This document shows positions 32,963-57,150 of a DNA stretch of 64,000 nt, piece by piece. The notes under the pieces were generated by a model. The model worked only from the letters and a program-made list of their open reading frames with translations. It did not search any database and was not told the origin of the DNA. Position 1 is the first letter of the stretch, and each line of letters starts with the position of its first letter. A program made the position numbers and the translations under genes. The stretch comes from Ranitomeya imitator. Taxonomy: Eukaryota. Location of the stretch: positions 373,674,001 through 373,738,000 of the forward strand of contig NC_091283.1 in the NCBI RefSeq assembly GCF_032444005.1. The letters run 5' to 3'.

Positions 32963-33069
32963 TATGTGTCTGTACCGACTAAAACTTGTGTAGAAAAGCA
33001 GCAGGACATAAGAAACCATCATCATCATATTATGAGATATTAGACTTTCAATTCAAACAACACAAATAA

Positions 33070-34175: not shown

Positions 34176-34757
34176 GCTCTTAGCCCATGAGAGACCTGCT
34201 CCCTCTGCTCATCTTGAGCCTGCTGCTGCTGAGTATATCCGTCATGGATATACTAGCTGGGAGAGCTCCAGAGATCCTCTCCTCCTGTTCCTCTCAGTGC
34301 GGCATCTCCCTCACACTTTGCGGTCTCCTCGTCCTCGCGGCAATATGGCACCCAGACTGCCACACTTGCCAGCTCGCGCATGAGAAAAGCATCGGGAGAC
34401 GTCGCGGGGGGGAATTGGTTGGCATGCAATGCTCGCGCTTGTGCCAGAGTCTTCATCCTCCTGGGACCCATCGGTGCAGCATGAAAAGAGTCGGTACAGA
34501 TACTCTATAGCTGTTATAGCCAGACCTGGCAGGAGATCTTCCAACTCACGTCCAATCAGCCCATCACAGAATAAGTGAAGAAATGAAATCTGCGCTCTGA
34601 TCGGTTACTATGGGAAATGAAAAAGTATTCTTTTAATGTGATGAGGTGACAATTTTATTACATGGAAATTTCCCTCATGGTATAAAACCCACAATCCTCC
34701 TATAATAATGTGATGAGTTCTTATATTCTCCATATTCTGCCCCACAGTCTCCTCCTC

Positions 34758-35280
34758 CAGGATCAGTGTCCTCAGCACAGGACCGACGCCACAGACATTT
34801 CATGGGAAATCCCTTTATTCTAAACTATTACACCCGAAATTAGGGAAATTACAGTTTCTCCATTTCTCCAGATTTCTATGGGGAGAAAAACGCGACATTT
34901 CCATTCCCTGTAATCTCCACCACCTGTCCCCAAACCAGAGCGCCCTCCCCTGTATACATGAGCACAGCCAGCGTTCTATTACTGTACATATACACATGGC
35001 AGAGCTGGGGGCACTATCTCCGGGAATGGAGGGGTTACTGCCCCCTGCCCCCGCCCAGTAATGGGGAATCTCCAGCACCTACCTCCACCTGCAGAGCCGC
35101 ACACCACATATATGGCTGTTCTGTGCGCACAGGACCTGTGATGAGGTCACAGGAGGGGAGGAGTCAGGGGTCACATGATCAGGGGCCTCAGTGTATGCAG
35201 GACTCTGCTGTGCTGGTTGTCATGGTGCTGGATGAGGGGAAGTTTATGTGTGGGGTCAGGAGGGGTTTACAGGGTGGGAG
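34758..35280 (-). promoter_or_regulatory. ZNF-A promoter / non-coding exon 1 cassette
   Basis: Repeated upstream of each ZNF gene; donor GAG|GTAGGT at 35083/35082; GC-rich with TGCGCA and GTCACATGA motifs. Promoter role is inferred. Confidence 0.7.
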
Positions 35281-36190
35281 GAGCAGAGCCGTGTGTGTAC
35301 GAGGTGTGCGGAGCAGAGCCGTGTGTGTACGAGGTGTACGGAGCGGAGCCACGTGTGTACGAGGTGTACGGAGCAGAGCCGTGTGTGTACGAGGTGTACG
35401 GAGCAGAGCTGTGTGTGTACGAGGTGTACGGAGCAGAGCCGTGTGTGTACGAGGTGTACGGAGCAGAGCCGTGTGTGTACGAGGTGTACGGAGTGGAGCC
35501 GTGTGTGTACGAGGTGTGCGGAGCAGAGCCGTGTGTGTACGAGGTGTACGGAGCGGAGCCGTGTGTGTACGAGGTGTACGGAGCGGAGCCGTGTGTGTAC
35601 GAGGTGTACGGAGCAGAGCCGTGTGTGTACGAGGTGTACGGAGAGGAGCCGTGTGTGTACGAGGTGTGCGGAGCAGAGCCGTGTGTGTACGAGGTGTACG
35701 GAGCAGAGCCGTGTGTGTACGAGGTGTACGGAGTGGAGCCGTGTGTGTACGAGGTGTGCGGAGCAGAGCCGTGTGTGTACGAGGTGTACGGAGAGGAGCC
35801 GTGTGTGTACGAGGTGTATGGCGCAGAGCCGCGTGTGTACGAGGTGTACGGAGCAGAGCCGTGTGTACGAGGTGTACGGAGCGGAGCCGCGTGTGTACGA
35901 GGTGTACGGAGCGGAGCCGTGTGTACGAGGTGTACGGAGCGGAGCCGTGTGTGTACGATGTGTAAGAAGTGGAGCCGTGTGTGTACGAGGTGTATGGCGC
36001 AGAGCCGCGTGTGTACGAGGTGTACGGAGCAGAGCCGTGTGTGTACGAGGTGTACGGAGCAGAGCCGTGTGTGTACGAGGTGTACGGAGCAGAGCCGTGT
36101 GTATGAGGTGTACGTAGCGGAGCCGTGTGTGTAGGAGGTGTACGGAGCAGAGCCATGTGTGTGACATGTACGGAGAGGAGCCGTGTGTAT
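35281..36190. repeat. 30-bp CpG-rich minisatellite, copy 2 (~30 units, most homogeneous)
   Basis: Exact 30-bp register over most of the array. Confidence 0.97.
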
Positions 36191-37362
36191 GTGTAATAGT
36201 ACTGTATCTGTAATACGTATGTTGCAGAACATATGTATGTAATCGACTTGTATGAAGACTGGTGTATAATGTGCGACTGGTGTAAGAACATGTTTCTGCA
36301 CCGTCATATATCTTCACAATAATTTTGTTTTGTCAGGAAGTACTTATCAATTTCGTTTTCTGAAGCATACATATAGGGTCGGTGGTGGCCTCCACATTTG
36401 GTTTCACACTCCTCTCTTTGATGTTTTTACTTGGACCTTGATCCTTCCTGTTCTTCACATTTGTAGCCCCAAACCCAGGAGAGGTAAATCTATTCGTGTA
36501 GATTGCCAATTACAGAGGTCGCCTTTCTGTTGGCAGATGGGCTCACACAATTTAGCAAAATGCATGTTAACTACCTAAATATTATAAATATTGCTTATTA
36601 GTAGAATTTCCAGAACAGTAGGTGCTAGAGAGCTGAAACCTTCCGAAGTGACTGATTTACCTTTTTTATGTGTCAAATTTGTGTCACATTGGTCCAGTTG
36701 TTTGCCCATAAATTAATATTTTCCTTTATAATTTTTTTTTTGCAGATATATGTTGAAAACGGTATGTCGTAGAGTGTTGAAATCTGATGTAAAACCTGAA
36801 GCGTCTGAATTATGTGATAAATTTGTAGCATTTTAGCATGGTCATTTGGCTGTAAATTAATATTTGCTTCTTTCATATTTTTGTCCAATATGTGCAGAAT
36901 GGTAGATCCAAGGGAAGTGAAACCCACTGTGAAACAACACACACACATACTGTGACAAAGTCACTGGCAAAGTACTGGTGGGGAGATACAGTAAGTATCA
37001 CTGCAGTTGTTAGCTTCAGTCATATGAACCTAGGAAAAAGCTCTAGCACACTAGGTGCTGAGAGGGGTTAAGTGCCCATTTTTTGGTCTAGGTTAAGTGA
37101 ACATCTGTAGAGTGGGTGGAGTCCATACACAGCCTTCTGGCTCATTCAGTGTTGGATGTGTCTGGAGGTGCAAACTCTAGAGCTGTATTTTCATAAGGAA
37201 AGCTGAACTTTTTTGTTCGTTCCTGAGCGGGCGGATCCCCGCAGCAACACTGACTGAGCCACACATTGTTTTTGATTTCCCATTAGGCCACAAAGGCCTT
37301 GTTTATTTTGTTAACATTGCACTGGTTTATGCAGTACCTCAATAAACCAGTGGAAGATTTAA

Positions 37363-39900
37363 CCCTTTAGTGACCAAGCCAATTTGGACCTTAATGAACA
37401 GGCCAATTTTTTTAAACTTAACCAGTTTCACTTTATGAGGTATTAACTCTAGAACTCTTCAATGGTTCCCAGTTATTCTGAGATCATTTTTTTGTGTGAC
37501 ATAGTGTACTTCATAATTGTGATAAAATTTGTTCCACAAGTCTACTTTACATCAGCACAATTTTTGAAATATTTTTTTTGTTAGGCAGTTAGAAGGGTTA
37601 AAAGTTGATCAGCAATTTCTCTAACAAAGTTTATAAAACCATTATTTAGGGTCCACATCACATTTGAAGCGACTTGGGGGTGGGGGGCCTATAGGAAAGA
37701 AAATAGCAAAAACGCCCCCCAAGTAACACCATTTTGGAGACTAGATCCCCTCAAGGAATGTATCTTGATGTGTGATGAGCACCTTCAACCCCCAGGTGCT
37801 TCACAGACGTTTAAAATGTAGAGCTGTGAAAATTACAACAAAAAAAACAAACATTTTTCCCACAATAATGTATTTTTAGCATCAATATTTTTTATTTTTA
37901 CAAGCTTAACAGGAGAAAATGGGGCCCAACATTTGTTTTGCAACTTCTCCTGAGTACACCAATACCCCATCTGTGGGGGAAAAGTACAGTTTGAGCGCAC
38001 GGCAGGGCTCGGAAGGGAAGGAATGGTGTTTTGGAATGCATACTTTGATGGAATGGTCTACGGGCGTCATGTCGCATTTGGAGAGCCTCTGATGTGCCTA
38101 AACAGAAAAAGAAACACAAGTTACCCCATTTTGGAAACTATACCCCTCAAAGATTTTATCCAGGGCTATAGTGAGCCTTTTGAACCCACAGGTACTACAC
38201 AGAATTAGATAACATTAGTTTGTATTTTCATATTTCAAATGTTATTGTATTTTTTTCAAAAATGTTGTTTTAGTGCCAAATATGTCATTTTCACAATGAA
38301 TAATAGAAGAAAACAAACCCCATAATTTTTTACGCAATTTCATCCAATACTCCATATGGTCAAAAACTTCTGTTTATGTACATGGCAGAGCTGGGAAAGG
38401 AAAGAGTGCCATTTGTCTGGAATAGATTGTGAATGCCATGTCGCATTTGGAGAGCTCGACATGTGAAAACAGAAGTAATCCTCCCCACAAGTTACCTCAT
38501 TTTGGAAACTAGACCCCTTGAGGAATTCAACTAGTCGTGTACTAAGCATTTTTAACCTACAGGTTATTCTCAAAACTTTATAACATTTAGATATGAGAAC
38601 AAAAAATTACATTATTTCCACTAAAATACTGTTTTAGCACCAAATTTATAATTTAGACAAGGGGTAATGGACGAAATTGGACTCCACAATTTGTTGTGCA
38701 ATTTCTCCCAAATGTGGCGGTACCGCATATGTGGTTGTACACTACTGTTTGAGCATACGGCAGGGATTAGATGATAAGGAGCGCTATTTGACTTTTAGAA
38801 TGCACATTCCGTTTAAATAGATTGTGGGTTCCATTAGTTGAGCCCCTGAGGTGCCAAAACAGCAAAACCTACCCAGGCGACCCCATATTGGAAACTTCAT
38901 TGCCTAAGGAATTCATCTAAGGGTGTAGAGAGTATTTTAAACTCATAGGTGCCTCACAGAATTTTATAACATTGAGATGTGGAAATATGATATTTTAGTG
39001 GTAAAAATATATATATTTTTTTAATTTGCTGCAAATTTTTCGGGTACAGAAGTGTTAATAGGTGAAACTGGACCCCATCATTTATTGCACAAATTCTCCC
39101 AAACGTGGTGATGCCCACATTGTCAGAAATAACTGTTAGGCCAGGTTCATACTGCGTTAAAGCAGCCCGTTCAATGCATAGCGCTGACGGACTGCGTTAA
39201 CGCTATAGCATACACGCCATCACATTATGCTATACTGCTAACGCAGATGATTCATCTGTGCTAGCGCTGCAGCCCGCGTCCGAGGCTCCGTCACTGAATG
39301 TCGACACATCGCTAGCGCATGCCGATTATGGCATGCGTTGGGGATGCGCCCGATAATAGGGGTTAATGGCAGCGTTAATGGACTGCATTACACCGCGTTA
39401 TGGCAGTCTAACGGACTGCCATAACGCAGTGTGACCACAACCTTAGGCCACACGTCAGGGCTGAGAAGGAGGGAGCGACATTTGCCAAGCGCCTAAGGTG
39501 CCAGAACATGAGAAAAACCCAAAAGTGACCTCATTGTAGAAATTGCACCTATCAATTAATTAATCTATGGCGGCAGTGACGATTTTGAAACATGCATGCC
39601 AGGTTTTTTTCTGGAGAATTACAAATATGCCTTTTTAGTGCCCCTATGCAGTGTAGAGCCCCCCCAATATATTGTAGCGCCCGCATACATTGTGCCCAGT
39701 TTGTGCATCTGACGACACATACCCCGTAAATTGCTAAGTGCTCTCTCCCCACTACAATAATGCCAAACATGTGGCTGCTTACTGTCCTTTAGGCACAATG
39801 GGGCTCAGAATGAGGGTACGTGTTTGAGAGCGCAGAATTCACTGGATTTTATTGGAAAGGCAGGAGCCATGTCACCTTTCCAGCAATTTCAAGAACAGAG
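37363..39900. mobile_element. Decayed piggyBac-type non-autonomous element with internal repeats; right end not found
   Basis: TTAA+ccctttagtgacc left end like 19368; recurring ttttggaaact/cccctcaagg blocks. Confidence 0.55.
39139..39442. mobile_element. PIF/Harbinger MITE
   Basis: TTA TSD (39136-38, 39443-45); imperfect TIR ggccaggttcatactgcgtt / aacgcagtgtgaccacaacc. Confidence 0.7.
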
Positions 39901-40739
39901 CTCTAATTTCCCCATCAGAATGGAGTGGTGTTCTTGTGAATGGTCTACAAATGTTGTACAAATACTCAAGTTATCATTATGGAGTATCCCTTTAACTTTA
40001 TAGCTCCAGGTGAAATGAAAAGTATTACATTCTTTTCCTTCATCTGCCATAGGGAAAATTCTTCTTTCCAAGTTATTTTGCAGTTTCTGATGAATGTCCA
40101 GATTTAGGGACTGAATTGCTATTAAAACTTTTGTTCAATTACTGCCACACTTGGTGCCAAGTCTTTTTTAACTACTCTTTCTAAATAGGTTCCTAGATAA
40201 CCTGCCACAGGCACTTTGTTGTCATTCCTAAAAAGCTTGAGTCCTATCTATACAGTAGCAGCACAAGTGTTGAAATGCTAAAAAACATACTACTGATTTT
40301 ACGGATCTTTTTGTGGACAAACTTTTCTGGGGCAATATTTTCAAGCACATAACTATAGCAATAAGATGGATAAAAAGTTTTCTAAATTTTCACATAATGC
40401 AGTTACTATGATTATTCCCCAACAAAAGGTTCATTTTCACAAACAAAAAGTGACCTGACAAATTCTACAAAGTCTGAAATCCATGATATAATTCTCCTCT
40501 GGCTAATTGTACAAAAAGCCTTAATTCTATTGTTAAGGAAGCGAAAAAAGATAGTTTAACTCTAATGCATTTCAGTTTTAAAAGTAAACTTTTATTAACA
40601 ATTAGAAACAACAAGTATTGAGATGCAGTTTTATATATAAATTAATGTGATGTATTCTATTCACTTGACTGATATATAGATGTGATACTTCTTTTCTTGA
40701 CCTACTGATCAGTGAAATATATTCAAAGAAAAAGAGTGG

Positions 40740-42055
40740 CTATTTCCCTTTGTGAGTTTTGTGATGCTTAATAAGATATTTTTTGTGTACAAAACATTTC
40801 CCACATTGTGAACATGAATATGGCTTCTCTCCTCTGTGAGTTTTTTGGTGGTCAACAAGACTGGATGTCCGAGTAAAACTTTTCCCGCATTCTGAACATG
40901 AATATGGCTTCTGACCTGTGTGAGTTCCCTGATGTGTAACAAGATAGGATTTATGGGTAAAACACTTTCCACATTCTTGACATAAAAATGACTTCTGCCC
41001 TGTATGAATTTTCTGGTGTGTAACAAAATTTGATTTATATCTAAAACATTTCCCACATTCTAAACATGAAAATGGCTTCTCCCCTGTATGAATTCTCTGA
41101 TGAGTAATAAGATTTGGCTTAAATCTATAGCATTTCCCACAGTCTGAACATGAAAACGGCTTCTGCCCTGTATGAATTCTCTGATGTGTAATAAGATTTG
41201 ATTTTACTGTAAAACCTCTTCCACATTCTGAGCATGAAAATGGTTTCTCCCCTGTATGAATTATCTGATGTGTAACAAGATTTGCTTTACATGTAAAACG
41301 TTTCCCACATTCTGAACATAAAAATGGCTTTTCTGTTTTGTGAATTTGTTTATGTTTAACAAGATTTAATTTAACACTATAACTTTTCTCACAATCTGTA
41401 CATGAATATGGCTTCTCCCCTGTGTGAAGCCTCTGATGTGTAACAAGATCAGATTTCAGTTTAAAACATTTCCCACATTCCGAACATGAAAATGGCTTCA
41501 CGTCTGTATGAATTATTTGATGCCTAATAAGACTTGCTTTTATTGTAAAACATCTTCCACATTCCGAACAAGAAAATGGCTTCTCCCCTGTGTGAATTCT
41601 CTCATGTCTAGCAAGATTTGCCTTAACTGTAAAACTTCTTCCACATTCTGAGCATGAAAATGGCGTTTCTCCCGTGTGAGTTTTCCAATGCTGAGCAAGC
41701 TGTGATTTTCCTACAAAACATTTCCCACATTCTGGGCATAAAAATGGCTTCTCCCCTGTGTGGATTTTTTGATGTGTAACAAGATGACTTTTCTGGTTAA
41801 AATATTTCCCACATTCTGAACATGAATATTGCTTCTTCCCTGGGTGAGCTCTATTTTTATTTTCTAGAATAGTGTGTGATGAATCAGGAGATATGATATT
41901 TTTAATAGATTCATTTGATATATCTTTGCTGTCAAAGGCTGAGGGTATAGCTGAGTTAATGATACGTTCTTCATAAATGTCTTGTATGAAATCATGATCT
42001 TCTGCTTTAAAATCAAAATACATCTCTTGGACTTCTGTGTTCCTGATACAGTCGC
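40740..42055 (-). CDS. ZNF-B terminal exon: 13 canonical C2H2 fingers
   Basis: 13 CxxC-12-HxxxH repeats with TGEKP-like linkers; acceptor ttttaacAG at 42056-57. Confidence 0.97.
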
Positions 42056-45000
42056 CTGTTAAAAATAAAACTGTTAGGGGTAGGGTCACTTGGGAAATAT
42101 TAAGATAAATTAGAATAAGCATCTTTAGGATGTGATTAACCCAATAATTGATGCCAGAGTGGCTCTTAAAAGGGGTTTTAGCATAGCAATAAATACGTTC
42201 TGTGTAAAATTTCAATTTTTCTTTTAAAAGGAATCTGTCACCTCACTTTTTGGATATAAGCTTTGCCACCGCCATCAGGGGCCCCGGATGTAACCTGAAA
42301 GATAAGAAAAACAAGTTAGATTATACTCACCCAGGGGCAGTACCTTTCCCGGCGCCTGCGCACTGCAGTACTTTGCTATGCCCTCAAGAGGGTAGATAAC
42401 ATACGCCCGTGCAGGTGCCGCGACAGGAAGCAAGGAAGAGGACATCATTGCATGAAGATGGGAGGCGCCAGACCGCGACACCTATCGGACCGGACCGCAC
42501 CGGGACCACCCCTGGGTGAGTATAATCTAAATTGTTTTTCTTATCTTTCAGGTTACATCGGGGGGCTTAACTACATCATTACAGAATGCTGTAGATAAGT
42601 CCTTGATGGTGGTGACAGATATTGGTGATATTTTTATATGCGAAAAATGAGGTGACAGATTCCCTTTAAGTAAATTCAGCCTCAATTATGTGAATATATA
42701 TGGTTACTAGTGATGAGCGAGTATACTCATTGCTCGGGTTTTCCCGAGCACGCTCAGGTGATCTCCAAGTATTTGTTAGTGTTCGGAGATTTAGTTTTCA
42801 TCCCAGTAGCTGAATGATTTACAGCTATTAGCCAGGCTGAGTACATGTGGGGGTTGCCTGGTTGCTAGGGAATCCGCACATGTAATCAAGCTGACTAATG
42901 GGTGTTAATCATTCAGCAGCCGAGATGAAAAATAAATCTCCGAGCAGTCATAAATACTCAGAGACCACCCGAGCTTGCTTGGGAAAACCCGAGCAACGAG
43001 TATACTCGCTCATCACTAATGGTTACTACTCACCCGGATGATTATGTGTAGGAATCTCCTCTTTACACCACTCACCACCCCTCACATATGTCTTTGTAGT
43101 ATTATCATGGGTCAGATTTTCACCCTGAAACAAATATTGTACAAGTCACAGACAGATGGAGAAGTCCCATCTATGATCAGCTCTAATCCTGCCATCTCCA
43201 TCGTTCTCATTACACAAGTATAAAACATGGAATACTGGTGGATAAAAAAGACCTTCATAGTAGAGATGAGAGAATCTTTTGAAATTCAAATTTGTCAGCT
43301 TTGCCAAATTTTCCCAGGAAATTCCACTTTCAGGGCAACTTTCAAGTCGAAAGTACTCTAAAGCCTCCAATTACCCTGAAAAATGTTTATAACACTCCGA
43401 AATCTACTAGAACCCCTTTAAAGCTTTTTAATGCAAATATAACCCTAGTAATGTGAAAGTGACCTAATATACGGCTATGAGTAAATGGATATAATCAGGG
43501 GTAAAAAAAAAAAGTTTTTTTCATGACAAACCTAACTGATAGACTTTTTAAAATAACGGTCCAATAATTATCCATTTTTTATGATAAGACAAACCGTTCT
43601 GTCGCTGCCTGAAAGTCCAGAAGAATGACTGAAATTTCCTGCGTAGGCAAAATTCACTTGGCTCGGTCTTTGGTCCAGGCCAAGCCTTACAATGTATTTT
43701 ATAAATAATGAAAGCAAGGCAGGGGCCTTGATGGTGACCATTTATTTGGGTGTCACTGCCACCATGGTGACCAGATCATAGATAAATTAGAATCCAAGTT
43801 TGCTTTCTTGATCGATTACTCTCTTCAATCTGGTGAGGTAGTGACAGAAAATAACAATATAGCCTTTTTTGTTACTTGCCCTGGGCAAAAATCCAGTCCT
43901 GCATAGATGTTCAGATCTGCAAAACTTGGAGATGCCAGTAACACCTTGCCTTGTTGTAGTGGTGCTTCGTCACAGTTCAAAATATTTGATGTAGATCAAG
44001 TATGAAATGCCATACACCAGAGTTCTGTGCCCACAGAAGTGATGGATTTGTGTGGAAAAAATGTAATCATTTTGGGCCCAAACCTGCACAGGGGCCAACC
44101 AGGGGGTACTACATAATTATATGTTTACAAAATCCAAAAATAATAAAGATGATGAAATGCTAATAATGATCATCATATTTAATATTTTCTTTGCAAACAA
44201 GCCCCAAGAAAGTATTAAGAACAAGTATAGAACAATGTGAAACAACGGTTGTAGGCCCATAGATTGTGGTCCATGAAAAAGCCATGAGAAAGCACCATGG
44301 AAACCTAACAGACGCAGGACAACAGTATAAATTTACCGGTTGTTCCTTCATCCCTTGTTGCATTTTTATCAGCATGTTTTCTAATATGATTATGATGGGC
44401 AGCCAGGGCAGTAGGATAAGTTTGAAAGTTTCTATTCTTATTCCAATCCTTGTTGCATCCTTCTCAGTGTTTTTTTCCAATTCAATAAGCTTAGCAGCCT
44501 CTTTGAAGGCTTACTCCAAAGAGTTGCCTTGAGCAACATCTTCTTCCCAAGGGTATATTTGTGTAAAAAATGCTGCACAATCAAATTGAGGATGTATCAT
44601 CTGGGATATGTGTTATTTTGTCCAAACCTAGCCAATGTTTCTGCCATTGTCGCTTACTAAGTTGCCCAGTTGTAGTTGTTGGTGAGCCAATCACTGGGAC
44701 CTTTTCTACTCAGTGCAGAAGAGCAACTCCTCTGTCATATGGGTTTGACACCTATGCTCATGAGAAATAAAACATCTAAGGTGGTGAGTGGATGCAATGT
44801 TCTTCCCTGTTGTTGCTGGGGATGGGGAGATATCCATCTTAAATACTTGAGAGGATGTGAAATAAGTGCCTCCCGATACTGCAACAAGAACTATTTCTCA
44901 ACCCTTGTAGCCTGATCATCTAACCTCCTTGTGGTTGGAGACTGCGAGATGTCTATTGAGGATGATGTGAATAAGGTCCAAAGGCACTGACTGATATGGA

Positions 45001-46638
45001 ATCAGACCCAGTACGCAAAACGTAGAGGTGTCACCACATGGTCTGCTTTAGTGGTGAATTTTTATCATTCAAATCATTGTACTTTACCTGATTGTAATTG
45101 CTGCACAATAACAATTCCATGCATCACTCACAGTTTCCGAAGGAATTTCTTACTTTGAAAAATCGTGGAAGCTAGGTTTCCTCCATTGAAGCGGAGCATT
45201 CACAAAAATGCAGTAGAATTCACATGGTCTCGTGCTGCAGATCCTGCACACTGCAATAGATTGGGTACTTTGGCAACACAGAAAAGAATTCTCATACCTG
45301 ACACGAGAGTACATTGTCAGTCAATGTCAGTGCCCTTATTAACATGGCTACCATTGCCAAAAGTACTATTAACCATACAGCTACACATTTAGTTCAGATC
45401 TTCCACCTACTTTGCTCCATCTCATCCATTGCATCACCAGAAAGAAGTTGTTGTAAAGTATCTTCCTTAGCACTGGGAGTGCATTTGAAAAGATTAACTG
45501 TGATGGTGTTGAAAGAGGAGGAATGTGTAAAACTCTGAATCAAACTGATGGTGGCACTGTCAGAGGTAACATCGTTCTGTTATGATTGACTTGAGTCCTT
45601 TTCATCCTCTGCTCACACATTCTTATTGCCAGCGTCTCTCATCTAACTAGGCACGCTGATTGGATGTGAATGCTGCAAATAAATTATCGGAATGCCTGCC
45701 CACCTCTATCCGAATTCATCTGATCCTTCCCTGGCTGATCAAATCACCTACAATGTATGAAACAGTGGCCAAAATTGTAAGTAGTTTGTGTGAAGCAAAT
45801 TGCATATAATTAAAATTTCGCTCATCTCTACTTCACAGCTGTCTACATATCATAGGGAAGATTTCATGACACCTTCTCTCCATCTACATGATGATCTTGA
45901 GGAACATTGGGATTTTCTTGTTTACAGTCCAGTGGAAGAAGATGGTGACATCTCTCTGGTGTTGTCCTCTTACTGGATAAAACTAGAGGAAACACATACA
46001 GGGACTGAATTCATTCTTAAAATACAGATAATTATAGTACATGTGTATGTAGTCCTGTCTATTACCTGGTGATGTGAGGAGCTGGGTATCCTCCATCATG
46101 ACGTCCTTGTACAGATCTTTATGTCCTTCTAAATACTCCCACTCCTCCATGGAAAAATAGACAGCGACATCCTGACACCTTATAGGAACCTAACACATAC
46201 AATAATAGGGTCATACTCCCGATCCCTTTATAGCGTTCATGTATAATGTCCCAGCAATCTCACCTCTCCAGTCAGCAGTTCAATCATCCTGTAGGTGATT
46301 TCTAGGATCTTCTGTTCATTGACGTCCTCATGTATCAGGAGGTGAGGTGGAGGCTCCGTGATTGGTCTCAGGTGTCTTCCCCATCCCTCAGACTCATCGG
46401 TTTGACAGCACTCACTAGAGGTCTTCTTAATTACTGTGTAATCCTGGTTATGAAGAGACAATAAATTACACTAGAGACATTTCTAGAGTCCTCACCTTCT
46501 GTTCATCTGTTATTCCCATAGATAAAAATGATGTAATGTGATGTCATCACAATCTCTCACCTCTCCAGTAAGCCGAAAGAGGATCTCTAGGGTGAGGTGT
46601 AATAACCTCTCCACCATCTTGTCCCTGTTCCTATCCAT
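40740..46638 (-). CDS. ZNF-B: KRAB-like/C2H2 zinc-finger gene, 627 aa, apparently intact
   Basis: Exons 46638-46561, 46443-46264, 46189-46066, 45982-45888, 43124-43034, 42055-40740; all GT-AG; total 1884 nt in frame. Confidence 0.92.
42228..42665. mobile_element. T2-family MITE, related to 11379-11967
   Basis: TTAA TSD (42224-27, 42666-69); TIR a(a/g)ggaatctgtcacctca. Confidence 0.85.
42708..43018. mobile_element. hAT-type MITE, 311 bp
   Basis: TIR tagtgatgagcgagtatactc; 8-bp TSD ATGGTTAC (42700-07, 43019-26); the paralogous ZNF-A intron shows the empty site at ~30698-30705. Confidence 0.92.
43600..45600 (-). pseudogene. Heavily decayed hAT (ZBED-like) transposase in ZNF-B intron 4
   Basis: Mixed-frame remnants: [47 protein letters not shown]; boundaries approximate. 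Confidence 0.55.
46066..46189 (-). CDS. ZNF-B KRAB-A-like exon
   Basis: [33 protein letters not shown]. Confidence 0.9.
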
Positions 46639-46937
46639 CCTTGACGGGTCAACCAGGATAATTCTCTTATATGGAAAATCTCCACTGAGAAGATCCAATA
46701 TAGTAGGGACCTGAATGGGAAAAAGATGCAACATCATTAAGTTCCCATGTAATAATTCAATTACTGGAGATAAGGGGGAAACATAGGAGGAGATAACATG
46801 TAAATGCTTTAGTCTCTTTCCATGGACTGAAACATGAGCTAAAAATCTTGTCAATGTAAATCCTCCATATTTGAGATCAAAGCATCTTCACATTACCACT
46901 ACAACCAATGGTTATTGCACAGGTGATGCTGCATATA

Positions 46938-48125: not shown

Positions 48126-48149
48126 TATGTATGTATGTTTAGAATGAAA

Positions 48150-48717
48150 ACATGTTGGAAAAATACTCCTGAGACTAGGCTAAACTAAGTTTGACAGAAA
48201 GAGAGCAGTGTGCAAAGGACCAGAAACCACACAGTAAGCACAGGACCTGAGATTAGACAGTCACGTGACTGCAGAGGTGTGGAGCTACCACATGAGATGA
48301 CGCGGAGACGGCTGAGAGCGTGGAGCACAGGACAGAGAACAACGACGTAGTCAGTGGTGAGCCGAGGGTCAAAAAGCCAGATGAAAGCAAGGTACCAGGG
48401 ACAGGACCAGAGAGTAAACCAAGATGAGCCAAGGGGTCAGATAACCAGGAAGGACAGAACAGTACCGAGCAGAAAACAGGCAGGAGTCAGGGGACAGAAC
48501 CGGGTCATACACAGCAAAGCACACACACACTGAGGCACAGTGATTACAGAGAGTAACCTGGATCAGCAACCACAAGCTGAGTAAACGGAAGTATCACCGA
48601 CACCTGACCCAGGAACCACAGTATTAAATAGCTGCCTCCGAACCAGAGAGAAGCAATCCTAGTTAACCCTGACCTGACAAGGACGGAGGCTGGATAATCC
48701 CGTCCAGAGTCATGACA
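48150..48717. mobile_element. Probable solo-LTR remnant
   Basis: Ends ...gtcatgaCA; purine-rich repetitive body with a TATA-like tattaaatag; left end unclear. Confidence 0.4.
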
Positions 48718-48759
48718 CCACCAAGATAAAAAAAAAAAAAACAAGAAATACTGGAGGTT

Positions 48760-49290
48760 ACAAAAGGTTTCTTCATCAAACCCACGGACAGGCATAATTT
48801 ATTAAGATTAAAGAGTTATCACCCCAGGAAAATGGTAGAATCCTTGCTATACATCCAGTATTTGTAACAAAATAGTGACAAGTGTAGCCGTGAAGAATCG
48901 TTTCAGGCTATGACATAAATTTAAGGATAGAGGGTATCCCTTACCCCTTCTAAAAAAAGAATGGGATTGATTGAAATACTCTCGTTTACACCAAATGAGA
49001 TCAAAAGTCAAAAGACATTGCGATATTGCTAGGATTGTCAGGCGACATTGGCCCATGTTAGGCAGATGTTTGCCTGACATTGAAGAATTTAAAGACCTTC
49101 AGATTTTGTCATATAAAAGAAATAAAAAACATTAATGTCAGGTTGGTACCCTCTGACATTTGGTTTTTCAAGACGAATGTTCAAACAACTCTTACAACAG
49201 GGTTGTTTAACGTGTTTGAATTGCGTCAACTGTAAATATATGATTGAAGGCAATTGATTATCACATCCTTTCATACAGCAGTTTAACAAG
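48760..49290 (+). mobile_element. Penelope-like RT-linker fragment
   Basis: LSYKRNKNI and CLNCVNCKYM Zn-knuckle-like motifs typical of the Penelope RT-EN linker. Confidence 0.6.
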
Positions 49291-49519
49291 GCAGGTTCCA
49301 TTCAGAACAGGACTCACCATAGTTACATAGGTGGAAAAAAGACCTAGGTCCATCAAGTTCAACCTTTCTCCACCAATTGTACGTTTTGTCACTATTGACC
49401 AAAGAAGTTGAGTGCACATGCTTAGCTTCACATCCAGAGGTTTACTTTCAAGATAGACGCGGTGAGGGGTCAGCCTGTCAGTGCTCAGACCATATGCCAC
49501 ACACTGCATTAAATTGTTT

Positions 49520-50100
49520 AAATTGGTCTGCATGGCTGCCGTTGTAGAAGGAAGCCTCTTCTAAAGATGACGCACAAGAAACTCCGCAAACAGCTTGCTG
49601 AAGACAAGAAGACTGAAGACATGGATTACTGGAACTATGTCCTGTGGTCTGATGAGACCAAGATAAACTTATTTGATTCAGATGGTGTCAAGCAATAGGT
49701 GAGGAGTACAAAGACAATTGTGTCTGGCCTACAGTCAAGCATGGTGGTGGGAGTGTCATGGTTTGGGGCTACATGAGTGCTGCACACTGTGGGGAGCTAG
49801 AGTTCATTGAGGTGACCATGAATGCCAACATGTACTGTGGCATACTGAAGCAGAGTATGATCTCCTCCTTTCGGACCCTGGGCCGCAGGCTAGTATTCCA
49901 ACATGAAAACAAGACCAAACACACCCCCAAGATGACCACTGCCTTGCTAAAGAAACTGAGGGTAAAAGCAGACTCCTGAATTTCCCTGACTCACGAGCCC
50001 TGGGTAAAAGTACTATACTGGCCACTTTTGTTGCTAGCGGTTTAGACATTAATGGCTGTGTGTTGAGTTATTTTGAAGGCACAACAAATTTACACTGTGT
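49520..50100 (+). mobile_element. Tc1 transposase fragment
   Basis: VLWSDETKINLF, VKHGGGSVMVWG, VFQH..KHT. Confidence 0.8.
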
Positions 50101-50439
50101 GAGGCAGTGATCGGTGTCATATGCGAGGGTCGCTGTGTGTCCCCCCAGGATACACACAGGCGTATTGAGGCCGCGACAGTGCATTGCAGTCACAAGCAGA
50201 GCTGTGATTGCAATGCAAAATAAATGTATGTGTTGGTCTTGGGCAAGCTACTTATCCAAGGCAGACTTAAGAAAACCTGCTCTGTGCTTTTGGTTTTTTT
50301 AAATGGACTACAGGATGGTAGTGGGATATTCACTTTTTTTCTACTTATTTTTTTTTTTCACATTACCTTAATTATCAGATATAAAGAAGAACACTTCACA
50401 ACCTCTTTTTTCTTCCGTCCTTTTTTCCTTTTTCTCACC

Positions 50440-51400
50440 GTGAGCTTTAATATACACTTTTCTCGGTATATTATTGGTTAATAAGTTAGTCCGCACAGTC
50501 CTCCTGTCACTTCTTTTTTTATTCTTTCTGATTATCTCAGTGCGCGGTCAGCGCATGCGCAGTTTGGGGCGACTCTGTGACTTTCTGTCCCGCCCTCTGC
50601 TGGATGCAGTGCGTTCCACGCCTGCGTTCCAGGCATGCGGCAAGGGAAGTCACTATTTCAATAGAGGAAGCCCGGAAAACCGCGCATGCGCAATGATACG
50701 CCGGAGACGCTGACATATGAATCAGCTGTGTATGTGCGCGCAAGGAGGGTTTAAATAGATGGATATACTATAGTACACATACACGCCCCCATTTGAGGAA
50801 GCCAGTATGGCGAAACGGCGCTGTCGGGGTCACTGATGGTCTCTCCTGTGTAGGTAATAGTATTCACATGCTGGGATACTTTTTTACATTTCTTATTGCA
50901 CTTTAGATCCTAATCTTCTGAAATTGCTGCTAGTCTGGTTGCAATATGCATAGTTGTACAGCACGGAGCACTTTATATAGTGCCGGTCACTAATGCTGCT
51001 AGTCAATATAACTATATGCATTTTTGCACAGCGCTATGCACTTTATATACACCATGTTAGGACATACATAGTTATTATATAACACTGTCCAGGTTCAAGG
51101 GAAATTTTTTGGCAGTCAGCAATTTCCTTCTGTCTTGCCGCCCCAAAAAATTACTTTTTGCATGATGCATTTTTCTTAACGGGCGTTATAGATTTTGTAG
51201 GATTTATGGGATGTATTTATATATTAATTTATAAGAATATTCTTTGAACCTTTTGGATTGTGTATTCCCAGAATAACTTAATTCTTGCACATGTGTTACC
51301 ATCAGTTATTTCAATTTTGAAACTTCCTTGTCTTGTTTTATGTGAGATTTTAAATATTTTTTTGTTAATAAAAATATATATTTTATCTACTTGTGCCTTA
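50440..51400 (+). mobile_element. Penelope-like pLTR remnant
   Basis: gcgcatgcgc-rich core, tttaaatag, hammerhead-like motif, AT-rich 3' part ending near aataaaa; same layout as 8560-9311. Confidence 0.5.
50786..50829 (+). ncRNA. Minimal hammerhead-ribozyme-like motif
   Basis: cccc-at-TTGAGGA-a-gcca(gta)tggc-GAAA-cggcgctGTC-gggg. Confidence 0.5.
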
Positions 51401-52389
51401 CCCTTTGTATTTTGCCAGTTATCTACCTGGTAAATATGAGTTGATTAGGATGGTAGTGGGGCAATCCATTTCCTACCTGGGTGGGGTTTCCTTGTGGCCT
51501 AGGGCCACAGGTTCCTTGTAGAAGCCCCTGAAGCAGAGGGTTGGATGTCAGTTTGGTTTTGCAAGCATGCTATGTGTTCTGTGAGGCAACACAGGCAAGC
51601 GGAGCAAAAAGCCTTGGCACCCACAGCGTACAGGGCGGTGCAGTCGGCCACGGCAACCAGCCTCGGATGTGGACTGTTTTGTTTCCCGGCTGCGATTCAG
51701 AGGATATCGAGTGCTGTGTATTTTCTGTGAGTTGGACATTAAAACACATTTTGCTTTGAACTTTGCTGGGTCATTGCCTCATCACTGCACAGTGTTGATA
51801 CTGCTGCACTACAACTGTTACAAAAGCTGTACACTGACTACCTTACTTTGTATCAAAATGGAGCAATTGTTTTTTTAAGCAACTTTTGGAATTTTTTTTC
51901 ACCACTTAAATAATGAACAAGCTAGACATTTTTGGTGTCTATGAACTCGTAATGATCTGGAGAATCATAATGGCAGGTCAGTTTTAGCATTTAGTGAACC
52001 AAGCAAAAAGCTAAACAAAAAACAAGTGTGGGATTGCACTTTTTTTTGCAATTTCACGGCAGTTGGAATTTTTTTTACCATTTTCTAGTACACGACATGG
52101 TAAAACCAATGGTGTTGTTCAAAAGTACAACTCGTCCAGCAAAAAAATAGCCCTCACATGGCCATATTGACGGAAAAACAAAAAAGTTATGGCTCTTGGA
52201 AGGGGGAGGGGGGGGGGGGGCAAAAAACGAAAACACAAAACTGAAAAAAGCTTCGGGGTTAAACATCTCAATAAGACCAGAGAGGACTTCAAACCGCTCT
52301 ACAGTTTCCGGAGGTGTGCAGCTCCGCAACTGAGCCAAATCCAAATGTGATCCCGCCGGTAGAGGGACGTAGGTCCTCTTGAATTCATT

Positions 52390-52685
52390 AGATGGCCCTA
52401 TATGCCCACTAAAAATAGTCAGACGCTATATGGTAATAAGACATACAATCAGATTCTTTCTCTCACATACGGACGGGTCCCCTTTTACTAAATATCAGTT
52501 TCACGCAATTTTTAAAGTGCTTAGAAGCGGTCGACGTCAATCCACAGGCATACGGGACACATTACTTCCAAATAGGGGCCGCCACCGAAGTAGCTAGAGC
52601 TGATGTATCGGAGGTCGAAGTGCAGAGAATGGGTCGCTGGAAATCTGCATGCTTTGCTAGGTATATAAGACCTGATTTGCTCAAG
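52390..52685 (+). pseudogene. Ngaro-like tyrosine-recombinase C-terminal fragment
   Basis: CPLK..H.DGSPFTKYQF..THYFQIGAAT..VQRMGRWKS..FARYIRP matches the HSFRIGAAT / GRW.S..Y.RYIR pattern. Confidence 0.7.
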
Positions 52686-53187
52686 TAACACACCTCGTCT
52701 CTTTCAGGAGTCCGTAAGCCTGCAGTTTGGGTAATTGGACACTCATACAGTACAGACCAAAAGTTTGGACACACCTTCTCATTTAAAGATTTTTCTGTAT
52801 TTTCATGACTATGAAAATTGTACATTCACACTGAAGGCAACAAAACTATGAATTAACACATGTGGAATTTACTTAACAAAAAAGTGTGAAACAACTGAAA
52901 TTATGTCTTATATTCTAGGTTCTTCAAAGTAGCCACCTTTTGCTTTGATGACTGCTTTGCACACTCTTGGCATTCTCTTGATGAGCTTCAAGAGGTAGTC
53001 ACCGGGAATGGTCTTCCAACAATCTAGAAGGAGTTCCCAGAGATGCTTAGCACTTGTTGGCCTTTTTGCCTTCACTCTGCGGCCCAGCTCACCCCAAACC
53101 ATCTCGATTGGGTTCAGGTCTGGTGATTGTGGAGGCCAGATCATCTGGCATAGCACCCCATCACTCTCCTTCTTGGTCAAATAGCCC

Positions 53188-53304
53188 TTAGGTTCTGTAG
53201 AAGGACGTGGATCTGGGGATTTATCATGATGGAATATAGGCTGAACTGGATGGACAAATGTCTTTTTTCGGCCTTACTAACTATGTTACTATGTTACTAT
53301 GTTA
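53188..53304 (+). mobile_element. CR1 3' tail micro-insertion
   Basis: Nearly identical to 17261-17373, including (CTATGTTA)n. Confidence 0.9.
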
Positions 53305-53448
53305 CACAGCCTGGAGGTGTGTTTGGAGTCATTGTCCTGTTGAAAAATAAAATAATGATCCAACTAAACGCAAACCGGATGGAATAGCATGACGCTGCAA
53401 GATGCTGTGGTAGCCATGGTGGTTCAGTATGCCTTCAATTTTGAATAA

Positions 53449-55361
53449 TTAAGTAAATAAGGCAGCACACTGCAGCGCCAAAACATGCAAACTTGAAAAC
53501 ACGAAATTTGAACTGCATTACTGCACTAGAAATATGAAAAATGAGAGCTTTTAGCGCATAAAAATGGCCAATTTTATGTGTACCTGGTAGCCCCTTTACG
53601 GCATCTCTCTTATACCAGGTCCTACGCTTGCCTTACCTCGCTGAGAATAAACGTCTCCATCTGAATGGGTACATGTGAAACCTCTTCTTAGACTAAAATT
53701 CTCTCTCTCTGTGGAGGGGTATTGGACCTGCTGTAATTAAAACACCTGAAGCTAGGAGGAGGAGTGCACGATCAGAAGGCTAGAGAATACACTTCAGGTG
53801 TTTTAATTACAGCAGGTCCAATACCCCTCCACAGAGAGAGAGAGAATTTTAGTCTAAGAAGAGGTTTCACATGTACCCATTCAGATGGAGACGTTTATTC
53901 TCAGCGAGGTAAGGCAAGCGTAGGACCTGGTATAAGAGAGATGCCGTAAAGGGGCTACCAGGTACACATAAAATTGGCCATTTTTATGCGCTAAAAGCTC
54001 TCATTTTTCATATTTCTAGTGCAGTAATGCAGTTCAAATTTCGTGTTTTCAAGTTTGCATGTTTTGGCGCTGCAGTGTGCTGCCTTATTTACTTAAAGGG
54101 ACACTGTCACCTGAATTTGGAGGGAACAATCTTCAGCCATGGAGGCGGGGTTTTTGGGTGTTTGATTCACCCTTTCCTTACCCGCTGGCTGCATGCTGGC
54201 TGCAATATTGGATTGAAGTTCATTCTCTGTCCTCCATAGTACATGCCTGCACAAGGCAAGATTGCTTTGTGCAGGCGTGTACTATGGAGGACAGAGAATG
54301 AACTTCAATCCAATATTGCAGCCAGCATGCAGCCAGCGGGTAAGGAAAGGGTGAATCAAACACCCAAAAACTCCGCCTCCATGGCTGAAGATTGTTCCCT
54401 CCAAATTCAGGTGACAGTGTCCCTTTAACTATATACGAGTTGGCGACTCTAGGTTCAGCACCTGTTCACACTGAGTCTATGTTTGGATGTGCAGATCAGG
54501 TTTTTGAAATGTATTCTCTAGCCTTCTGATCGTGCACTCCGCCTCCTAGCTTCAGGTGTTTTAATTACAGCAGGTCCAATACCCCTCCACAGAGAGAGAG
54601 AATTTTAGTCTAAGAAGAGGTTTCACATGTACCCATTCAGATGGAGACGTTTATTCTCAGCGAGGTAAGGCAAGCGTAGGACCTGGTATAAGAGAGATGC
54701 CGTAAAGGGGCTACCAGGTACACATAAAATTGGCCATTTTTATGCGCTAAATGCTCTCATTTTTCACATTTCTAGTGCAGTAATGCAGTTCAAATTTCGT
54801 GTTTTCAAGTTTGCATGTTTTGGCGCTGCAGTGTGCTGCCTTATTTACTTAACTATATACGAGTTGGCGACTCTAGGTTCAGCACCTGTTCACACTGAGT
54901 CTATGTTTGGATGTGCAGATCAGGTTTTTGAAATGTATTCTCTAGCCTTCTGATCGTGCACTCCGCCTCCTAGCTTCAGGTGTTTTAATTACAGCAGGTC
55001 CAATACCCCTCCACAGAGAGAGAGAATTTTAGTCTAAGAAGAGGTTTCACATGTACCCATTCAGATGGAGACGTTTATTCTCAGCGAGGTAAGGCAAGCG
55101 TAGGACCTGGTATAAGAGAGATGCCGTAAAGGGGATACCAGGTACACATAAAATTGGCCATTTTTATGCGCTAAAAGCTCTCATTTTTCATATTTCTAGT
55201 GCAGTAATGCAGTTCAAATTTCGTGTTTTCAAGTTTGCATGTTTTGGCGCTGCAGTGTGCTGCCTTATTTACTTAACTATATACGAGTTGACGACTCTAG
55301 GTTCAGCACCTGTTCACGCTGAGTCTATGTTTGGATGTGCAGATCAGGTTTTTGAAATGAA
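53449..55361. mobile_element. Non-coding insertion of 424-bp units (inverted partial copy plus ~2.9 direct copies)
   Basis: 15-bp TSD TTCAATTTTGAATAA at 53434-48 and 55362-76; period 424 (54837 vs 55261). Confidence 0.88.
54097..54424. mobile_element. T2-family MITE, 328 bp, near-perfect palindrome
   Basis: TTAA TSD; TIR agggacactgtcacctgaatttgg; the sister tandem units show the empty TTAA site. Confidence 0.95.
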
Positions 55362-56628
55362 TTCAATTTTGAATAAATCCCCAACAGTGTCACCAGCAAA
55401 GCACCCCCACACCATCACACCTCCTCCTCCATGCTTCACGGTGGGATCCAGGCATGTAGAGTCCATCCGTTCACCTTTTCTGCGTCGCACAAAGACACGG
55501 TGGTTGGAACCAAAGATCTCAAATTTGGACTCATCAGACCAAAGTACAGATTTCCACTGGTCTAATGTCCATTCCTTGTGTTCTTTAGCCCAAACAAGTC
55601 TCTTCTGCTTGATGCCTGTGCTTAGCAGTGGTTTCCTAGCAGCTATTTTACCATGAAGGCCTGCTGCACAAAGTCTCCTCTTAACAGTTGTTGTAGAGAT
55701 GAGTCTGCTGCTAGAACTCTGTGTGGCATTGACCTGGTCTCTAATCTGAGCTGCTGTTCACCTGCGATTTCTGAGGCTGGTGAACTTATCCTCAGAAGCA
55801 GAGGTGACTCTTGGTCTTCCTTTCCTGCGGCAGTCCTCATGTGCGCCAGTTTCTTTGTAGCGCTTGATGGTTTTTGCCACTGCACTTGGGGACACTTTCA
55901 AAGTTTGCCCAATTTTTCGGACTGACTGACCTTAATTTCTTAAAGTAATGATGGCCACTCATTTTGCTTTACTTAGCTGCTTTTTTCTTGCCATAATACA
56001 AATTCTAACAGTCTATTCAGTAGGACTATCAGCTGTGTATCCACCAGACTTCTGAATAACACAACTGATGGTCCAAACCCCATTTATTAGGCAGGAAATC
56101 CTACTTATTAAACCTGACAGGGCACACCTGTGAATTGAAAACCATTTCCGGTGACTACCTCTTGAAGCTCATCAAGAGAATGCCAAGAGTGTGCAAAGCA
56201 GTCATCAAAGCAAAAGGTGGCTACTTTGAAGAACCTAGAATATAAGACATAATTTCAGTTCACACTTTTTTTGTTAAATATATAATTCCGCATGTGTTAA
56301 TTCATAGTTTTGATGCCTTCAGTGTGAATGTACAATTTTCATAGTCATGAAAATACAGAAAAATCTTTAAATGAGAAGGTGTGCCCAAACTTTTGGTATG
56401 TACTGTATGTCTACTAGGAGAGAAAAAGGGCCGAAATTCGGCCGGGCGGTTTAAATTTAGGTATTCCGAACCTAAGGACACCGGGAACAGCTGATCTGCA
56501 GAGGGGCCGGTGATGGTGGGGGGGGGGAGTCGCCACCGAACTGATCAGACATTGGTGTCCAATATTAAGTAGAGGCCATCAAAGTCTGGAGATCCACTGC
56601 AATATAAACTGGGCTCTTCTCCCACCAC

Positions 56629-57150
56629 CAGGATCAGTGTCCTCAGTACAGGACCGACGCCACAGACATTTCATGGGAAATCCCTTTATTCTAAACTATT
56701 ACACCCGAAATTAGGGAAATTACAGTTTCTCCATTTCTCCAGATTTCTATGGAGACAAAAACTAGACATTTCCATTCCCTGTAATCTCCACCATCTGTCC
56801 CCAAACCAGAGCGCCCTCCCCTGTATACATGAGCACAGCCAGCGTTCTATTACTGTACATATACACATGGCAGAGCTGGGGGCACTATCTCCGGGAATGG
56901 AGGGGTTACTGCCCCCTGCCCCCGCCCAGTAATAGGGAATCTCCAGTACCTACCTCCACCCGCAGAGCCGCACACCACATATATGGCTGTTCTGTGCGCA
57001 CAGGACCTGGGATGAGGTCACAGGAGGGGAGGAGTCAGGGGTCACATGATCAGGGGCCTCAGTGTATGCAGGACTCTGCTGTGCTGGTTGTCATGGTGCT
57101 GGATGAGAGGAAGTTTGTGTGGGGTCAGGAGGGGTCTACAGTGTGGATGT
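56629..57150 (-). promoter_or_regulatory. ZNF-B promoter / non-coding exon 1 cassette
   Basis: ~97% identical to 34758-35280; donor GAG|GTAGGT at 56954/56953. Confidence 0.7.

Follow-up and report, generated by a model that had tools for sequence, protein, structure and literature searches.

KRAB zinc-finger (KRAB-ZNF) gene families are a standard example of fast-diverging repressors, and the locus described here raises the question of why the 5' ends of such genes should be nearly identical when the bodies of the same genes are not. The window, which is the whole 64,000-nucleotide stretch of poison frog (Ranitomeya imitator) DNA that was analysed and is free of N, carries three neighbouring genes (A, B, and C) of a tandem array, all on the minus strand. 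A sequence-only reading of this stretch had ascribed the likeness of the 5' cassettes to homogenisation by exchange next to a minisatellite, to a portable promoter unit, or to unusually strong selection. Homogenisation fits the data best; selection probably adds to it, over the exon-1 block only, and the portable unit is unsupported. We regard it as probable that local conversion of a homology island, together with a family-wide constraint on exon 1, keeps the 5' module alike.

Assignment to the KRAB C2H2 class is based on the presence of a KRAB-A box and of tandem C2H2 fingers within a single 3' exon. In gene A (minus strand throughout), exon 2 is fully open (31708–31857; placed by alignment, the acceptor ttcag/G, and translation) and includes an internal start, MDRDRDKM, which is used in many annotated models. 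It is followed by exon 3 (31402–31581; 180 nt, with splice joints on its flanks in contigs of likely RNA runs), exon 4, which encodes the KRAB-A box (31195–31318; Pfam KRAB, 3.6e-11; 94.4% identity to gene B), exon 5 (30999–31111; an open reading frame, with a joint from 31111 to 31195 in likely RNA and CT..AC ends), and exon 6 (30713–30803; cag/ acceptor, /gtgagt donor, and, in likely RNA runs, depth and a joint near 30807). The zinc-finger exon is an open reading frame encoding 11 C2H2 fingers (17698–18885; ORF list; Pfam zf-C2H2, 1.5e-49). In gene B, exons 2–5 and their small introns (45873–46710, minus strand) were placed by alignment with the gene A block, giving exon 2 at 46561–46710, exon 3 at 46264–46443, exon 4 (KRAB) at 46066–46189, and exon 5 at 45873–45982, all on the minus strand; the finger exon encodes 13 C2H2 fingers (40740–42215, minus strand; ORF list; zf-C2H2, 2.8e-69). 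Exons 2 and 3 gave no Pfam match.

The cassette of gene A comprises an exon-1 block (35083–35266, minus strand), identified by translation, annotated proteins, and depth, and a 325-bp intron-1 part (34758–35082, minus strand), identified by alignment to gene B and by contig depth. In gene B, the corresponding parts lie at 56954–57136 and, by alignment to cassette A, at 56629–56953 (both minus strand). Each cassette adjoins a 30-bp minisatellite detected by Tandem Repeats Finder, consisting of ~30.6 units in gene A (35267–36188) and six units in gene B (57151–57329), and the unit consensus is identical in these two genes. A third copy of the cassette, which had been reported to start at position 1, does so: positions 1–181 (minus strand) align with 35100–35280 (nhmmer E-value, 2.9e-47). 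This copy C is cut by the start of the window, contains the exon-1 block from its tenth coding base in the upstream direction, and has its gene body to the left of the window; its minisatellite contains ~28 units (194–1045). An Rfam scan of 34500–36400 returned a single match at chance level (E = 0.032), below the gathering score.

The cassette had been described as non-coding, which is not wholly the case, as the exon 1 that it contains supplies an ATG in frame with exon 2 in both gene A and gene B. In cassette A, the coding part (35109–35083; ATG at 35109–35107) reads MWCAALQVE and is followed after 35083 by the donor GGAG/GTAGGT; in cassette B, the coding part (56980–56954; donor after 56954) reads MWCAALRVE. 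The stretch upstream of this ATG is a candidate 5' UTR and/or proximal promoter. Among 233 annotated proteins retrieved for Ranitomeya, Dendrobates, and Phyllobates, 97 have the exon-1 peptide joined to exon 2, and the translated exon-1 block (CDLITGPVRTEQPY followed by MW.AALQVE) is identical in at least eight annotated Ranitomeya proteins. For R. imitator itself, the exon 1-to-2 splice is predicted from the reading frame, the splice-site consensus, and the annotated models of related species; this joint is absent among the 15 joints listed for the likely RNA runs. The matches in R. imitator are all on one 854-Mb record, and those of R. variabilis that have the exon-1 N-terminus are, with one exception, on a single 776-Mb record.

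The claim of near-identity between the cassettes is borne out by alignment. Over ~509 bp, cassettes A (34758–35266) and B (56629–57136) are separated by 11 substitutions and a single 2-bp indel (97.8% identity), fewer than the ~15–16 differences counted by hand, since that count included variable bases at the minisatellite junction (35267–35281). The comparison took in two full copies (A and B) and one partial copy (C), the latter having 98.8% identity to A and 98.2% to B over the 165–167 bp shared. Differences between A and B are evenly spread, with five substitutions and one indel in the 277 bp of the exon-1 part (98.2%) and six substitutions in 232 compared bases of the intron part (97.4%), so that high identity is not confined to functional bases. 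The homologous exons of the same two genes (exons 2–5, pooled) differ at 71 of 564 sites (87.4% identity), their small introns at 86 of 408 (78.9%), and their finger exons have ~75% identity. The cassette is thus more alike than the exons (p = 2e-11, Fisher's exact test) and than the introns (p = 1e-21), and the proposal that cassette and coding exons are unequally diverged (97.8% vs. 87.4%) stands. The figure of 27 differences in 180 nt that accompanied it is exact (31581–31402 vs. 46443–46264), and refers to the third exon of the gene, or to its second coding exon should exon 1 be treated as non-coding. Two hallmarks of gene conversion are therefore present: the identity of the tract is significantly above that of homologous flanks in the same gene pair, and neutral sites are as highly alike as functional ones. 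The homology between A and B breaks off sharply at 34757/56628; no common intron sequence was found in the two genes outside the cassette, the exon 2–5 blocks, and the finger exons, and no homology was found distal to the minisatellites.

Contig depth separates the cassette into two tiers. In DNA run X1, in which single-copy sequence has a summed contig depth of 11.4, depth is 226–614 over 34680–34989, 141,000–183,000 over 34990–35290, and 57,000–117,000 over exons 2–5; each value adds up contigs with 90% identity or more and is not a copy number, and minisatellite-like words may inflate the exon-1 bins. On this scale, the exon-1 block (~200 bp) and the body exons both reach thousands of copy-equivalents, against only ~20–54 for the intron part. 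The contigs have corresponding edges: a unique DNA contig stops at 34755, and the contigs of paralogs part at 35064–35070, 13–19 nt beyond the donor. The presence of the intron part at tens of copies means that it lacks conservation across the family, which counts against selection having caused its likeness. In likely RNA runs, the intron part has zero depth and the exon-1 block has some; relative to DNA depth, however, the exon-1 block is 50–250 times less represented than exons 3–5 in the two runs, so that many expressed members may skip the exon-1 block, or the block may be largely untranscribed.

The timing of the event can be gauged against a sister organism. Within a unique intron of gene A, 109 of 2509 sites (4.3%) differ from the orthologous contigs of that organism, and the divergence between cassettes A and B (2.2%) is half of this value, assuming equal substitution rates. 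By this indirect measure, the common ancestor of the cassettes would be younger, and gene A older, than the split from that organism, and for this reason recent non-allelic gene conversion of a minisatellite-bounded homology island is the likeliest cause of the likeness of the cassettes. Homogenisation beside the minisatellite, as the sequence-only reading had suggested, is thus supported by the near-equal identity of the intron and exon-1 parts, by the restriction of the longer block to tens of copies, and by a divergence below that of orthologous sequence. Each gene opens with the same module, namely a CpG-rich 30-bp minisatellite, the ~200-bp exon-1 block with its strong donor and in-frame ATG (MWCAALQ/RVE), and intron 1. 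Across the family, the exon-1 block is constrained; locally, genes A, B, and C, with a few tens of other copies, have in common a longer block that reaches into intron 1 by 325 bp. Under the proposed mechanism, the cassette of a paralog would be copied during repair of a break within or next to the minisatellite, a recombination-prone repeat, and the converted tract would stop where homology ends, at 34757. The identity step, both copy-number tiers, the coding potential of exon 1 and its use in other species, and the absence of transposon hallmarks are shown by the data; we infer from them the conversion mechanism, the minisatellite as its initiator, and any shared regulation.

A broader proposal is that the minisatellite and exon-1 block together form a common array-type promoter that co-activates KRAB-ZNF genes, hundreds to thousands of them, along a single poison-frog chromosome, and that is itself kept uniform by conversion started in the minisatellite. 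This has been likened here to the transcription body of miR-430 and the chromosome-4 znf genes of zebrafish, and were it true, regulation would stay fixed while DNA-binding specificity diversifies; we consider it doubtful. The zebrafish znf genes likewise include many zinc-finger genes on one chromosome with common 5' features, but they are not KRAB genes, and what they have in common is an architecture (a TATA box and a sharp start site) established by CAGE, rather than near-identical sequence as in the frog.

Chimeric genes could also have been made by unequal crossing-over within intron 1, in single events that joined recent 5' duplicates to older bodies and were followed by loss of the upstream flanks. 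The genes stand in tandem and share an orientation, and the copy number of the minisatellite varies, both of which are typical of unequal exchange; however, a single event would have duplicated the upstream flank as well, and at 1–2% divergence this flank would still be recognisable, yet none was found, making this origin unlikely.

Also improbable is the portable unit, by which the minisatellite and cassette would be mobile (a non-autonomous transposon, or a Helitron-like element with a captured promoter and first exon) and would have landed before unrelated ZNF bodies. The abrupt edges at both ends of the common unit, the very high depth of the exon-1 block, and a gene-strand end of CTGG preceded by a small hairpin are all in keeping with mobility, but the hairpin is not significant (z = -1.8), a T follows CTGG in only one of the two copies, and there is no common terminus distal to the minisatellites. 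Searches of the window copies for transposon termini (TIR, LTR, and Helitron ends), target-site duplications, and a repeat flanking the unit found none. Moreover, all three copies in the window are at the 5' ends of genes and in gene orientation, the reading frame runs on from exon 1 into exon 2 in genes A and B alike, and exon 1 and the body exons have depths of similar magnitude.

Purifying selection alone would require the whole 509-bp block, intron part included, to be a regulatory element (promoter plus intronic enhancer) that evolves slowly everywhere, which is quite improbable. In its favour is the identity of the exon-1 translation among annotated Ranitomeya proteins, and the exon-1 block is also found with hardly any change in further dendrobatid genera; because conversion cannot cross species, exon 1 and its 5' flank must be under some constraint. 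Against it, identity is equally high in the intron part and the exon part, although the former is present at tens rather than thousands of copy-equivalents, and most paralogs diverge within 13–19 nt of the donor; furthermore, for the 232 intron bases to differ by 2.6% when the remaining introns of the pair differ by 21%, every base would have to be almost completely constrained. Selection thus probably contributes over the ~200-bp exon-1 block, with its thousands of copy-equivalents and its conserved cross-genus translation, and over that block only. Variants of the exon-1 peptide are in addition skewed by species (LWSAALQVE in 12 of 12 R. variabilis cases), as expected from concerted evolution or from lineage-specific bursts. 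An artefact of assembly or polishing, for which a repetitive region adjoining a minisatellite might be suspected, is scarcely credible, given that the copies retain 11 fixed differences and unequal array lengths, that cassette A is covered by contigs of independent runs, and that the unique contig stops exactly at the homology edge.

Local conversion with a constrained exon 1 would place the frog locus among known cases of concerted evolution by ectopic conversion, which likewise have a sharply bounded tract of high identity, diverged tandem paralogs, and an adjoining recombination-prone repeat. Short conversion tracts among poly-ZF paralogs have been detected with GENECONV (PMC2604467). The frog tract differs in taking in exon 1 with its 5' flank and a portion of intron 1 rather than finger or KRAB coding sequence, and in lying within an exon-1 block that is conserved family-wide. 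Promoters of ~1 kb that are well conserved inside subfamilies are known from mouse V1R genes, where they were proposed as a basis of co-regulation (PMC1955453). The V1R genes resemble the frog genes in forming a large, fast-diverging tandem family with 5' regulatory and first-exon regions that are alike within subfamilies, but they are a different gene family, with no minisatellite described, and their start sites were mapped by 5' RACE (PMC1955453). In cluster 10 of the mouse, gene units are highly homologous and promoter regions are described as markedly divergent (PMC5363842). Mouse KRAB-ZFP clusters are likewise tandem and recently expanded, but the pattern of their promoters is opposite to that in the frog, where old, diverged bodies follow a first-exon module that neighbouring genes carry almost unchanged and that can still be recognised in other genera. 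Both processes, concerted evolution and the conservation of family promoters, are well known; what is new is their setting in a very large gene family. If the module does drive expression in common, all members of the repertoire would act as a single regulatory unit, and co-regulation of the ZNF repertoire, which the sequence-only reading had expected, would hold in this conditional sense.

The locus also provides a natural series, in minisatellite size (6, ~28, and ~31 units in genes B, C, and A) and in nested homology blocks, for studying the bounds of conversion tracts and the seeding of conversion by minisatellites. The minisatellites are CpG-rich, with CpG o/e of 1.45 (A), 1.48 (B), and 1.15 (C) and GC of 0.56–0.61, and agree in composition with a CpG-island promoter, which is defined by o/e > 0.6 and GC > 50% over at least 200 bp at the start site; the exon-1 block does not, being strongly depleted in CpG (o/e 0.14–0.20; 0.14 in cassette A). 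In view of this depletion, too, the cassette is no more than a candidate promoter. The possibility that the minisatellite had grown out of exon 1 was rejected, as the 9-mer that they have in common, GCAGAGCCG, was equalled in 41 of 500 shuffles. A LINE-like fragment comes after the minisatellite of gene B, at 57337.

In the window, KRAB zinc-finger genes lie in tandem on the minus strand amid frog-type transposons (Tc1, CR1-like, DIRS, and Harbinger ORFs), in sequence that contains no N. Gene A runs from ~35.3 kb down to a finger exon at 17698-18885, and gene B from ~57.2 kb down to a finger exon at 40740-42215, both on the minus strand; only the 5' end of gene C lies in the window (1-181, plus a minisatellite at 194-1045). 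Pfam identifies a KRAB-A box in exon 4 (3.6e-11) and C2H2 arrays in the final exons. The closest protein relatives, found with exons searched singly rather than as a joined spliced model, are dendrobatid KRAB-ZNFs (Anomaloglossus, Ranitomeya, Dendrobates, Phyllobates; 50-62% identity over the fingers). In gene A, ~12 kb (18.9-30.7 kb) separate exon 6 (30713-30803) from the finger exon, and are filled by a DIRS-like element (ORFs 21651-24571) and satellites; the gene B counterpart spans about 1 kb (43128 to about 42050).

Each gene begins with a cassette, an exon-1 block followed by the first 325 bp of intron 1. Cassettes A (34758-35266) and B (56629-57136) align with 11 substitutions and one 2-bp indel (97.8% identity), so that the ~97% identity claimed from the sequence alone stands, while its 15-16 differences included extras at the minisatellite junction. 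The third copy reported at position 1 is borne out: copy C, aligned to 35100-35280, matches A at 98.8% identity and B at 98.2%. A/B homology breaks off abruptly at 34757/56628, and sequence comparison within the window found nothing common to the three loci distal to the minisatellites. Elsewhere, A and B are 86.7% identical in exon 2, 85.0% in exon 3 (for which the 27/180 differences of the sequence-only reading are exact), 94.4% in exon 4 (KRAB), 84.5% in exon 5, 81-87% in the small introns, 66% at the 3' end of intron 1, and about 75% in the finger exons. Full alignment thus upholds the greater conservation of the cassette than of coding exons (p = 2e-11); it is also more alike than introns (p = 1e-21), as is its intron part alone compared with the small introns (p = 2e-12).

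Summed depths in a DNA run from this organism, which are sums over contigs at least 90% alike and not copy numbers, show two nested blocks: 141,000-183,000 on the exon-1 block (34990-35290) and 226-614 on the cassette intron part (34680-34989), with 57,000-117,000 on the exon 2-5 block and 11.4 on unique intron sequence. The first block, exon 1 with its surroundings (~200 bp, minisatellite-flanked), is found throughout the very large family. The second reaches 325 bp into intron 1 and is common to only some tens of copies; A and B are among them and so, presumably, is C, of which the window does not reach the intron part. The homology edge coincides with the end, at 34755, of a unique 1835-nt contig; contigs from paralogs cease matching at 35064-35070, 13-19 nt past the donor, and one passes at 35249 straight into minisatellite-like sequence. 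Some contigs of DNA run X1 lack the family intron 3 (31316-31402; joints 31316->31400 and 31317->31402, depth 73-118), which probably reflects processed retrocopies of family members in the genome.

Gene conversion is the best reading of the likeness between cassettes, and rests on four observations. First, the cassette intron bases (97.4% identical between A and B) are as alike as the exon-1 part (98.2%), yet are unconserved across the family, so selection on function does not explain them. Second, contigs of a sister organism diverge from the unique intron of gene A at 109/2509 sites (4.3%) vs. 2.2% between cassettes A and B; gene A was therefore already present before the split from that organism, and its body long predates its resemblance to B. 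Third, all three neighboring cassettes lie within 1-2% of each other, and A and B share one minisatellite consensus unit while the arrays differ in length (6 units in B, about 28 in C, about 31 in A), as is typical of ongoing unequal exchange. Fourth, transposon hallmarks were looked for and not found in the window, as detailed below for the portable unit. The cassette would then be a homology island, which its abrupt edges fit; beyond it, these old paralogs no longer have intron or intergenic sequence that can be aligned. Repeated conversion can therefore maintain only sequence that is still homologous, and we infer that conversion starts in the minisatellite.

Selection, also proposed earlier, probably acts on part of the cassette. 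Conversion cannot explain likeness between species, and in Ranitomeya models the translation of exon 1 recurs unchanged, which indicates constraint on this exon and on the sequence just 5' of it; the intron part, equally alike but not family-wide, falls outside this explanation. Single unequal crossovers could have produced the shared 5' ends, but are less likely than conversion because no upstream flank is common to the loci. The proposed portable unit finds no backing, since the three window loci have no common terminus beyond the minisatellite arrays, no significant terminal hairpin and no RNA family match in the cassette region, and the only three copies in the window are all gene-oriented.

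Gene conversion has been reported among poly-ZF paralogs (PMC2604467). Promoter regions are conserved within subfamilies of the fast-diverging, tandem mouse V1R genes (PMC1955453), and many znf genes on one zebrafish chromosome have a common promoter architecture (bioRxiv 10.1101/2021.08.09.455629). In contrast, the promoters of a mouse KZFP cluster are reported to be markedly divergent although its gene units are homologous (PMC5363842), which is the reverse of the frog array. Our literature search found no paper on this dendrobatid KRAB-ZNF family or its 5' module; we rate the kind of process as already known and the module as a new instance.

Contrary to what had been supposed, the cassette is not wholly non-coding. 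On the gene strand, the minisatellite is followed by ~180 bp, an ATG (35109-35107), 27 coding bases (MWCAALQVE in A, MWCAALRVE in B), a donor (GGAG|GTAGGT, after 35083), and 325 bp of intron 1. Translation puts the ATG in the reading frame of exon 2, all 150 nt of which are open in genes A and B; 17 codons before the ATG there is an in-frame stop. The motif [M/L]W.AAL[Q/R]VE occurs in 97 of 233 fetched annotated proteins (Ranitomeya imitator, R. variabilis, Dendrobates tinctorius), 75 of which start with it, and runs on into VSTISDPLSE, with which exon 2 begins; the proposed exon 1-to-2 junction is therefore used in many models from related genera. Several models extend further 5' with CDLITGPVRTEQPY, the exact translation of 35151-35110, and two Phyllobates terribilis models (P0118, P0119) start with a frame-shifted reading of the exon-1 bases. 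Judged from these models, exon-1 sequence is conserved across Ranitomeya, Dendrobates, and Phyllobates. LWSAALQVE is found only in R. variabilis, most R variants come from D. tinctorius, and Ranitomeya accounts for most cases of the Q variant; in a sample seeded with one R. imitator query, this skew is only suggestive of concerted evolution or lineage-specific bursts.

Contigs of two likely RNA runs confirm that exons 2-3, 3-4, and 4-5 are joined on the minus strand; 35083->31857 is absent among the 15 joints listed from run contigs. Both runs cover 34990-35290 and show zero depth over 34060-34989, the pattern that transcription of exon 1 with removal of the intron would give, with the run type guessed and the contigs possibly paralogous. 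In Ranitomeya models P0062 and P0039, unrelated upstream exons precede the exon-1 block, which is entered via an internal acceptor (..tcatcacag|GTCCTGTGCGC, 35135-35140) and is thus sometimes an internal exon. Exon-1-like units recur after exon 1 (LYVECGSAGGG, CGVRLCGWR) in models from R. variabilis and D. tinctorius (P0036, P0221, VGAGGSIILY read-throughs), which suggests that some genes carry exon 1 and the donor region in tandem copies. Many dendrobatid and aromobatid models (P0009, P0001, P0011, P0050, P0104) carry the exon 2-5 N-terminal module twice, which could mean either real tandem modules or read-through of two genes; exon 5 of the first module is joined in frame to the second exon 2 (..QDHQ|VPTISDPLSGDL..), which accounts for the open 5' part of exon 2 in the window genes.

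Candidates for the promoter are the exon-1 block, the 30-bp minisatellite at the 5' end of every gene, or both. The block is CpG-depleted (o/e 0.14-0.20; window average 0.50) and the minisatellites (35267-36188, 57151-57329, 194-1045) are CpG-rich (o/e 1.15-1.48, 3 CpG per unit). Every gene-strand unit contains GTACACCT, which includes ACACCT, resembling the core of a T-box half-site. When scaled to DNA depth, representation in the two likely RNA runs is 50-250 times lower for the exon-1 block than for exons 3-5, so much of the block may be untranscribed, or many expressed members may have other 5' ends; MDMDRDKM in exon 2 is where many annotated models begin. Co-regulation of the family via the shared 5' module is a hypothesis. 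Two other clean minisatellites lie at 28397-29030, in the long intron of gene A (43-bp units, 14.7 copies, 97% matches), and at 5743-6629 (25-bp units, 36.8 copies). An intron-1 repeat at 32665-32974 (summed depth 556,000-867,000 vs. ~11-14 for single-copy sequence) is a very high-copy element, with an inverted, 92% identical copy at 57653-57938.
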